A stretch of DNA of 63,613 bases, counting the filler, from Olpidium bornovanus S191 (lineage: Eukaryota; Fungi; Olpidiomycota): NCBI GenBank assembly GCA_017911155.1. It is 28 parts of 28 records of this genome, joined end to end, with 100 filler letters (N's around TTAATTAATTAA, not from the genome) between each part and the next. Parts side by side here need not be neighbours in the genome. Positions count along the whole stretch, not along the records: positions 37,026 to 38,245 come from JAEFCI010004315.1; 27 more parts are not named here. One strand, given 5' to 3'. Shown one piece after another: positions 36,184-38,345 of the stretch. Position 1 is the first letter of the stretch. The number at the start of each line of letters is the position of its first letter. Under the pieces are notes generated by a model. It did not search any database. It was not told the origin of the DNA and saw only the letters and a list, made by a program, of their open reading frames with translations. A program made the position numbers and the translations under genes.

Positions 36184-37167
36184 GTTTCTCTATTCGGCCC
36201 TTGTGGACTGAACGCCCAAACCTGTGACGTACCGCAAGCAGAGGATTCAGACTAGCGAGTTCGACGAGCTCCGCCAGTTGGCCGTGCAATACGAGCGTGG
36301 AAAAAGCGCGCAGGAGGACGGCGCGTCCCAACCCCCCCGGGGCACGTCGTCACCATCCGTGTTTGCAGCAAATTTTCCATGGCGGTCCACGCACGTCGGA
36401 CACACCACCTTCACGTCGGTAAACGGCACTGCCGCTCATATATCCCTGCAGAGCACACATCCTCCACGCCGGTCCATATGCCGCGGCGAAACAACCTCCA
36501 ATCCGCACTGGAAGAGGCGGATTGCGCGAACGGCGGCAAAAAGAGGGCGGACGGCGAGAAGGAGGCGGCGGGGCGGAGGAGTGGGGGGGGAGGCGTCGCC
36601 AGCCACTTACCAGGGTTTGTTCTGCGTACGCCTTCTGGCAAGGATGGGGTGGTGCGTGTGCGTTTGGACGGCGTCTTGCGTGGTGTTGGGCGGTGGTTGC
36701 GCGGGCAAAAGGGGGGGGGGATGGGTTGGAAGTGGGGGGGGGGGTCGCAATTGCAACCGCAACCTAGCCCCGGGATTGCAACCCGCGGGGGACCTGTCTT
36801 CCCGCATGCAATATTACCTGTTAGGTTATCAACAGACTCTATCTATTTCTAGCCTGTTTATAGTGGGAACTTCCTACCGGGATCACAGGGCTTCACGGGG
36901 AGCGGGCGGGGGGGAAACTTGTGTCNNNNNNNNNNNNNNNNNNNNNNNNNNNNNNNNNNNNNNNNNNNNTTAATTAATTAANNNNNNNNNNNNNNNNNNN
37001 NNNNNNNNNNNNNNNNNNNNNNNNNAACCGACAGGGCCCTTCCAGCGGGCCGCTGGATTTCCTGTGCAGCGCAAAAACCGCACGCGCTCCGCAGTCTCGC
37101 GTCGGCGGCTCCTCAGACGCGCGGGATGGGGACGGCGGGCGGGCAGCGCGGAGATGTCCGCGAGGAT

Positions 37168-37174
37168 TATAAAA
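37168..37174 (+). promoter_or_regulatory. TATA box (TATAAAA) upstream of the GYK peptide gene
   Basis: Followed by a putative 5'UTR intron 37289-37399 (GTGAGT..CTAAT..CAG) and the ATG at 37453. Confidence 0.6.
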
Positions 37175-37452
37175 CGCGCACTGACTTTCCCCCGGCTTTC
37201 CAAAAGCCCCGCGCTTCCCGTCGGCAAAAACCTTCCTCCCCATCACCCGCCCCCCCTCCTTCTCCGGGGAGGCCCAACGCAAGCTAACGTGAGTGATGTC
37301 GCAATAGGCCGGCCCTGTTCGCCGGCGTTTTCCGTTCCTGCCGCAGTCGTTGCCCGCCGGACTTTTCTAATAGAGCGGATTTCCTTTCCGCGCACGCAGG
37401 AAACCTCGTGAGCTCCGCGCAAGCCCTCTTCCCCCCGGTGCTACCTGAAGCC

Positions 37453-37725
37453 ATGAAGTTCGCTCTTATTGCCGTCTTCGCCCTTCTTGCCCTCGCGCAG
37501 GTTGTGTCTGCGGAGCCCAGCCCAGATCCCGCCCCGGCTCCCGCCCCGGAACCCTGGAAGAAGGGCTACGGCGGTTACGGGATGAAGGGATACGGCGGCG
37601 GATACAGGAAGAAGGGATACGGCGGTTACGGGAAGAAGGGCTACGGCAAGGGCAAGGGCTACGGCAAAGGCTACGGAAAGGGCAAGGGCTACTACTGGAA
37701 GGGCAAGGGCAAAGGATACTACTGA
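37453..37725 (+). CDS. Secreted Gly/Lys/Tyr-rich precursor (90 aa): signal peptide, (X-Pro)7 pro-piece, 56-aa cationic mature peptide
   Basis: MKFALIAVFALLALAQVVSA-EPSPDPAPAPAPEP-WKKGYGGYG..KGKGYY*. AATAAA at 37746-37751. Confidence 0.9.
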   Translation: MKFALIAVFALLALAQVVSAEPSPDPAPAPAPEPWKKGYGGYGMKGYGGGYRKKGYGGYGKKGYGKGKGYGKGYGKGKGYYWKGKGKGYY

Positions 37726-38345
37726 GCTGCGCTTACGGACGAATGAATAAATTTTATCGAGAACATATGATAGTTTATCAAACCGAATAGCTCTGTTCGC
37801 CAGATTTCAAAATAAAATTGACCGACGCCGATAACCAGTTTTTTGCGCGACAACTCGGTCCGAGGCGGCGGGCGTGTGCCGGAGCGAGGCGCCCTACCCT
37901 CTCGTTTTTGCACGTGGCATGCGCCGCGCCTCCACCGCGCCTCCACCCCCGTCCGCGCCCAATCTTCCTTTTGGATTTGTTTGCGGTTTGTCCAAGCGGT
38001 GCGCGGCTACACACGGAGCCGGCGCCATCCGCCTTTCGGTGTTGCTTTGCGATCCAGCTGTACCAGCACGTTTGAAAACTTCTGTCAAGGGCCGTGGCGG
38101 TGGGGCCTTTAAGCTCCTCGGCGGCATGCAAAATATCGTTCACGTAGACAAAAGCAGCGGGACAGCTGCGGGATCTTCCGGCTCACGACCTAAGGGAGTG
38201 CATCCGGTGTTTATCTGGCAAAAAGAAAAGGCCGCGGCCGGCATCNNNNNNNNNNNNNNNNNNNNNNNNNNNNNNNNNNNNNNNNNNNNTTAATTAATTA
38301 ANNNNNNNNNNNNNNNNNNNNNNNNNNNNNNNNNNNNNNNNNNNN

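Follow-up and report, generated by a model that had tools for sequence, protein, structure and literature searches.

The window, ie the whole stretch of DNA analysed (63,613 nucleotides), is made up of parts of 28 records of the Olpidium bornovanus S191 assembly. One part, positions 37026-38245, contains a short plus-strand reading frame whose predicted product is a secreted precursor of a peptide dominated by glycine, lysine and tyrosine. A sequence-only reading had proposed that this is a complete gene, that the peptide is activated by a dipeptidyl peptidase, and that it might be a zoospore adhesive, a wall cross-linker or an antimicrobial. The questions raised by the locus are therefore whether the gene is real and transcribed, how its product would be matured, and which kind of function fits it best.

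Gene structure and splicing

The open reading frame runs from the ATG at 37453 to the TGA at 37723-37725 on the plus strand, as do all the features given below, and encodes 90 amino acids. The TATA box at 37168, the intronless reading frame (37453-37725) and the poly(A) signal at 37746 were all located where they had been proposed. The G+C content is 60.5% across the piece 37026-38245, and codon use in the reading frame is strongly biased (TAC 13/13, AAG 14/16, GGC 15/24, GC3 0.77).

Four public runs were aligned to the piece, and the Logan contigs of two of them, X1 and X4, were informative. The kind of these runs was only guessed (X1 'RNA?', X4 'DNA?'); neither is recorded as RNA. In both, position 37288 is joined directly to 37400, with 111 nt bounded by GT and AG skipped (two contigs in X1, depth 1018; one contig in X4, depth 327). 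This joint confirms the 5'UTR intron, which had previously been putative, and fixes the strand. The intron (37289-37399) has a GTGAGT donor and a CTAAT branch-like site approximately 28 nt ahead of the CAG acceptor, and depth is zero from 37313 to 37394.

Exon 1 (37200-37288, 5' end approximate) is non-coding and contains no ATG. Its coverage extends from the bin 37190-37230, about 25-60 nt downstream of the TATA box (TATAAAA, 37168-37174), to the joint at 37288. Exon 2 (37400-37782, 3' end approximate), at whose upstream border contigs start at 37400 or 37401, holds the rest of the 5'UTR (37400-37452), the entire coding sequence and the 3'UTR. With the coding sequence confined to exon 2, the searches described below all refer to one exon. 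The poly(A) signal AATAAA (37746-37751) lies 21 nt past the stop codon, and the X4 contigs stop about 30 nt later, at 37782. The only ATG upstream of the reading frame is at 37296, inside the intron, and when the two UTR pieces were joined with a local script the spliced 5'UTR was free of ATG. Since the intron takes the upstream ATG with it, the spliced RNA has its first AUG at the start of the reading frame.

In X1 and X4 the contigs cover the exons and leave uncovered both the intron and the region upstream of about 37190. Spliced, exon-only coverage of this kind is the pattern of an mRNA of approximately 470 nt and not of genomic DNA, the kinds of the runs being guessed. The contig joint and the exon-only coverage together uphold the proposal of a complete, spliced and transcribed gene for a secreted pre-pro-peptide.

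No convincing open reading frame was found on either strand in the flanks, 37026-37452 and 37726-38245. A second AATAAA is present at 37811-37816, 65 nt past the first, and an 11-nt direct repeat (CCGCGCCTCCA, x2.2) at 37924-37947 in the downstream flank. A 957-nt contig of X1 (depth 49) matches 37693-38190 at about 94% identity with six non-triplet indels, including a 13-nt insertion, and continues for 446 nt past 38190 in sequence unlike the window. Near 38190 the minus strand reads CCTTAG|G, which may be a 3' splice site belonging to a convergent gene.

A transcribed gene family

Single contigs 99-100% identical to the window have a word depth of about 2,000 (records 2, 4 and 6), compared to 49 for the contig of the downstream flank, and the gene is apparently abundantly transcribed. 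Over the repeat-coding part the summed depth is about 42,000, a figure that pools variants and so is no measure of expression. Contigs of 90-99% identity are numerous, 72 in X1 and 18 in X4. Within the coding sequence the indels of these variants all preserve the frame (+3, -3, and 21 nt in place of a 90-nt stretch), and those in the flank are of 1, 2, 1, 1, 13 and 1 nt. Several of the coding substitutions are synonymous, and the stop codon is kept, TGA being replaced by TAA (37724 G>A). In-frame indels, synonymous changes and a preserved stop indicate that the coding sequence is under constraint in a family of several copies (or several strains). The gene is thus a member of a transcribed multigene family, the variants also allowing for a source of several strains.

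Some variants carry a different signal-peptide sequence on the same pro-piece; their loose ends read ...AIAVIAQVAC-A|EPSP. In the variant signal, AQVAC-A|EP, an A-x-A cut site is retained and the dipeptides stay in register.

The predicted pre-pro-peptide

The translation falls into three parts, each of which agrees exactly with the earlier description: a 20-residue signal, seven X-Pro dipeptides, and a 56-residue mature peptide of the composition G24 K15 Y13 W2 R1 M1 with no acidic residue. The signal peptide (37453-37512), MKFALIAVFALLALAQVVSA, was read from its sequence features, which are an initial MK, a hydrophobic core of 13 residues, and V-S-A at positions -3 to -1 of the predicted cut. 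The pro-piece (37513-37554) has a net charge of -3, and its 14 residues are strictly X-Pro seven times over, in the order EP SP DP AP AP AP EP. The run fills the exact span between the cut after VSA and W35, and the dipeptide that follows is W-K. At least five in-register X-Pro dipeptides were obtained in only 6 of 200,000 shuffles of the protein, which argues that the actual run of seven is not a matter of chance. The DNA of the pro-piece contains a 12-nt tandem repeat at 37527-37549.

The predicted mature peptide (37555-37722) has a mass of 6.1 kDa, a pI of 10.1, a net charge of about +16 and a GRAVY of -1.6. Glycine makes up 43% of it, lysine 27%, tyrosine 23% and arginine 2%; there are no aliphatic hydrophobic residues, and it ends in KGYY. 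KGY and GYG each occur eight times, GYGGYG twice and KK three times, in units of KKGYGGYG and GKGY. The underlying DNA is correspondingly repetitive, with a 24-nt unit encoding KKGYGGYG present 3.7 times at 37556-37647 and repeats of 12, 18 and 21 nt at 37636-37710. In a single-sequence AF2 model, the signal forms a helix over residues 3-18 with a pLDDT of about 80 and the mature part scores 45-59. That the model is confident solely on the signal helix is consistent with a disordered mature 56-mer.

Relatives in the databases

No Pfam family matched the protein even at E<=10, the plant GRP family (PF07172) included, and Rfam gave no match on either strand. A feature search of the ESM Atlas returned no usable match, an exact look-up showed the protein to be absent from the assembly collection, and no protein within 50% identity was found in large collections that include many sequenced animals and plants. 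A scan for bacterial promoters and terminators, which is irrelevant to this gene, found nothing beyond chance.

The sole matches in a word-index search were an orphan protein from a JGI metagenome (P0001) and a mite protein sharing GKGYGKGYG. P0001, encoded on a 930-nt contig of JGI sample 3300071325, has 144 residues, with a signal, the dipeptides AP MP EP and then a part rich in G, K, Y and F; a word search found no relative of it. In the JGI metagenomes a protein-guided scan gave 599 pattern stretches, of which tblastn confirmed none. A search with a DNA pattern for GYGKGKGYG yielded 27 loci, and at none of them did a signal and X-Pro run stand on a small peptide. The metagenome contexts of this motif (L025, L006, L018 and L021) are unrelated to the window gene; among them are C-terminal tails, both those of RRM (PABPN-like) proteins and those of bacterial proteins resembling chain-length-determinant/tyrosine-kinase proteins, both judged from translations.

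When 1.84 billion representatives were searched exhaustively with HMMER, 12 proteins were returned at E<=1e-3, the best at 5e-7 and none below 1e-7. In ten of the twelve, a signal is followed by 3-11 in-register X-Pro/X-Ala dipeptides and then by a peptide of 35-53 residues rich in glycine, aromatic and basic residues. The named matches are 'neuropeptide-like protein 31' of Penaeus indicus and proteins of Armadillidium, Darwinula and Halocaridina, with the fungus Coemansia as the one exception to a crustacean list. An isopod protein with the same three-part layout (P0006) is filed at NCBI as UNVERIFIED_CONTAM, Armadillidium vulgare, and its true source is uncertain. The contigs that carry the weak matches were of no use for taxonomic placement. 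The matches are all rich in Arg/His (arginine 6-22%), with lysine at 0% except for 12% in P0013, and most of them end in glycine. Among the weak matches, about 12% lysine after the X-Pro run is found in P0001 and the shrimp protein P0013 alone.

When the protein is aligned with these matches the architecture is common to them and just four columns are invariant, with E values of 5e-7 to 1e-3 obtained on low-complexity sequence. This shows a likeness to the crustacean peptides that is weak and, as far as alignment can tell, compositional, ie one of analogy and not homology. The specific family appears to be lineage-restricted and unannotated, whereas the three-part design itself, as judged from sequence layout, is recurrent and of a kind already visible. 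It had been claimed that no such system was known in zoosporic fungi; for fungi none was found here either, and it is in crustaceans, 'neuropeptide-like protein 31' among them, that the layout recurs.

Comparison with known precursors

Four groups of known precursors resemble parts of the gene; one of them, the DOPA wet-adhesive and eggshell proteins, is taken up with the possible functions below. The first comprises the Gly/Tyr-rich peptides NLP-29, NLP-31 and the caenacins of C. elegans, shrimp NLP-31, the armadillidins and AfRgly1, which are likewise made as small secreted precursors from multigene families. Here too a signal stands on a precursor of fewer than 150 residues, and the mature part is cationic, disordered as predicted, Gly/Tyr-dominated and carries GYGGYG; in the crustacean matches, moreover, the signal is separated from the mature part by an in-register X-Pro/X-Ala run, as in the window. 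The basic residues of the NLP-29/31 group are Arg/His, the charge is moderate and most members end in glycine, whereas the window peptide is 27% lysine, has a charge of +16 on 56 residues and ends in YY. Their C-terminal glycine is taken here as a signal for amidation. The likeness to this group is compositional (best E 5e-7), and the base composition and intron of the window gene seem unlike those of arthropods.

The second group is that of precursors trimmed by dipeptidyl aminopeptidases. In promelittin and in alpha-factor, which is processed by Ste13, an even-numbered X-Pro/X-Ala run directly precedes the mature N-terminus. The same is found in the window, where the pro-piece is purely X-Pro, in register from the predicted cut to the predicted mature N-terminus, and W-K ends the run. 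The dipeptides of alpha-factor and of the fungal Kex2-processed repeat proteins (KEPs) follow a Kex2 cut, whereas here they directly follow the signal peptide, an arrangement of which the classical example is promelittin. The mature peptides of promelittin and alpha-factor are unrelated to that of the window.

The third group is fungal. Like the window gene, the KEPs (PMC6339444) and the Gly/Tyr family of Coemansia found here combine, in small secreted precursors, an acidic, proline-rich pro-piece with a product rich in glycine and tyrosine. The Coemansia family (P0008 and P0016-P0019) is unnamed, consists of secreted proteins of 78-90 residues, and has a signal followed by an EP/KP/QP-rich pro-piece that ends in KR. 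Its product begins W-S-G-Y-G..W-G-C-G-C-P, continues with (GYG/GVG)n and ends in YY, resembling neutral Gly/Tyr peptides released by Kex2. P0008 was considered as a relative and ruled out on its KR-ended pro-piece, neutral product, CGC motif, Val/Ile and Cys; the window peptide differs from that family in having no KR or RR site and in being polycationic.

Proposed maturation and possible function

The reading we put first is that of a polycationic peptide that is antimicrobial or binds polyanions, and that is trimmed by a dipeptidyl aminopeptidase. Taken as a whole this reading is tentative, and it is placed ahead of a cross-linking material; its steps differ in how firmly they can be held. 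Signal peptidase would very probably cut after Ala20, a site favoured because no other sets the next fourteen residues in X-Pro register. An enzyme of the Ste13/DPP-IV type would then strip the seven dipeptides pairwise and halt at Trp-Lys. Such trimming is reasonably probable, and the proposal of a dipeptidyl peptidase-activated precursor is strengthened by the ten of twelve best matches in which an in-register X-Pro/X-Ala run lies between signal and peptide. STE13 removes XA and XP dipeptides, and a survey of 250 fungi found KEX1, KEX2 and STE13 in nearly all of them (PMC6339444). A disordered Gly/Lys/Tyr peptide of 56 residues and charge +16 would thus be released extracellularly. There it might act as a host-defence-type polycation on anionic surfaces, either microbial membranes and walls or the polyanions of a host wall, an action we regard as possible though somewhat short of an even chance.

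A host-defence polycation is put first for three reasons: the matches that share the architecture are of the NLP-31/armadillidin type, members of that class are active, and antimicrobial effectors are known from plant-associated fungi. Antimicrobial activity has been measured for synthetic or native members of the class, namely NLP-31 (PMC2453101), armadillidin H (PMC5031766) and AfRgly1 of Artemia (PMC12387859), and plant-associated fungi secrete antimicrobial effectors (PMC8670511, PMC9438471). Counting against an antimicrobial are the use of lysine in place of Arg/His, the YY end, a charge density far above that of NLP-type peptides, and a Gly/Lys/Tyr composition that cross-linkable adhesives have as well. 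Of the three functions originally suggested, the antimicrobial type is the one favoured by architecture, whereas the adhesive and the cross-linker have composition as their sole basis.

The alternative that survives best, rather doubtful as it is, takes the gene for a structural or adhesive precursor. Its tyrosine would be oxidised (DOPA, dityrosine, quinone-lysine) and the product would harden the wall of a cyst, sporangium or resting spore, or glue the cell, in convergence with Pc-1 of the sandcastle worm, Mfp-5 of mussels and the eggshell proteins of trematodes; the pro-piece would keep the precursor soluble or inert until release. In the points that bear on this alternative the mature peptide departs from the NLP-31/armadillidin analogues, being based on lysine and not on Arg/His, with a far higher charge density and no C-terminal glycine; quinone cross-linking uses Lys, not Arg. 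Abundant transcripts and a multigene family suit a bulk material. The proportions of glycine, lysine and tyrosine, the presence of KGY and GYG in eight copies each and the short tandem repeats match the basic, repetitive DOPA cement proteins, and Pc-1, Mfp-5 and the trematode eggshell precursors are all Gly/Lys/Tyr-dominated (PMC4275877). GYGGYG has been reported from a liver-fluke eggshell protein, which resembles the mature peptide in this respect (PMC4014650). Against this, Pc-1, Mfp-5 and the eggshell precursors are larger than the window peptide, which at 56 residues is short for an adhesive precursor; no sequence relationship to them was found, and no homology to any adhesive appeared among the word-index or HMMER matches. 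The matches that share the layout include proteins named for the antimicrobial type, and we know of no characterised adhesive or eggshell protein that carries an X-Pro pro-piece.

In its boldest form the same proposal would have a eukaryote other than an animal, perhaps a zoosporic parasite of roots, produce a family of latent Lys/Tyr/Gly 'glue' or wall-hardening peptides in bulk. Such peptides would be masked by X-Pro dipeptides, armed by a DPP, and cross-linked through DOPA/dityrosine and lysine at encystment or spore-wall formation, in convergence with Pc-1 and Mfp-5. We consider this fuller version unlikely. By analogy with the known peptides, the function would be that of either an antimicrobial type or a cross-linking material.

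It is improbable that the gene comes from something other than a zoosporic fungus, either as an NLP-31-type gene of an animal (crustacean, mite or nematode-like) or as a glycine-rich wall protein of a plant or alga, in which case AP and SP would be hydroxyproline glycosylation sites and would not be removed. The named matches are crustacean bar one, and the mite protein shares GKGYGKGYG; among the Logan matches, P0010 has a weak match to the Pfam GRP family. Zero reads of the gene were present in two large raw RNA runs that share the species label, a result rated as 'no test', which would fit a label that is the host's and not that of the source organism. The 60.5% G+C, a C-rich 5'UTR and the 111-nt GTGAGT...CTAAT...CAG intron speak against an animal source, these features being unusual for arthropods and in keeping with fungi and many protists. 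Neither the failure of the window protein to match Pfam GRP at E 10 nor the absence of a protein within 50% identity from collections rich in sequenced animals and plants is what a plant or animal origin would lead one to expect.

Very improbable is a Kex2-type multi-peptide precursor, in which cuts after WKK, RKK and KK would free short signal peptides of the GYGGYG type: KEPs are known in early-diverging fungi, KK is a minor KEX2 site (PMC6339444) and the three KK sites stand at the 8-residue spacing of KKGYGGYG x3.7, but KEPs are recognised by at least three near-identical peptides at KR or RR, rarely KK, and have XA/XP dipeptides after each KEX2 site, whereas this precursor lacks KR and RR, has a single run abutting the signal and no dibasic site in its C-terminal 28 residues, and would yield very short, nearly featureless units.

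Implications

Although public protein sets apparently lack the gene, transcripts of its family seem to rank with the most abundant of the organism in several independent public runs. If the organism is the root-infecting zoosporic parasite, the family would be a leading unannotated candidate for an effector of antimicrobial or surface-binding type, or for wall or adhesive material. The design of a signal, an X-Pro/X-Ala run and a cationic Gly/Tyr peptide, otherwise mostly crustacean, is extended here to a lysine-based form, and the occurrence of that form in a lineage that probably differs greatly would argue that the design arose more than once.
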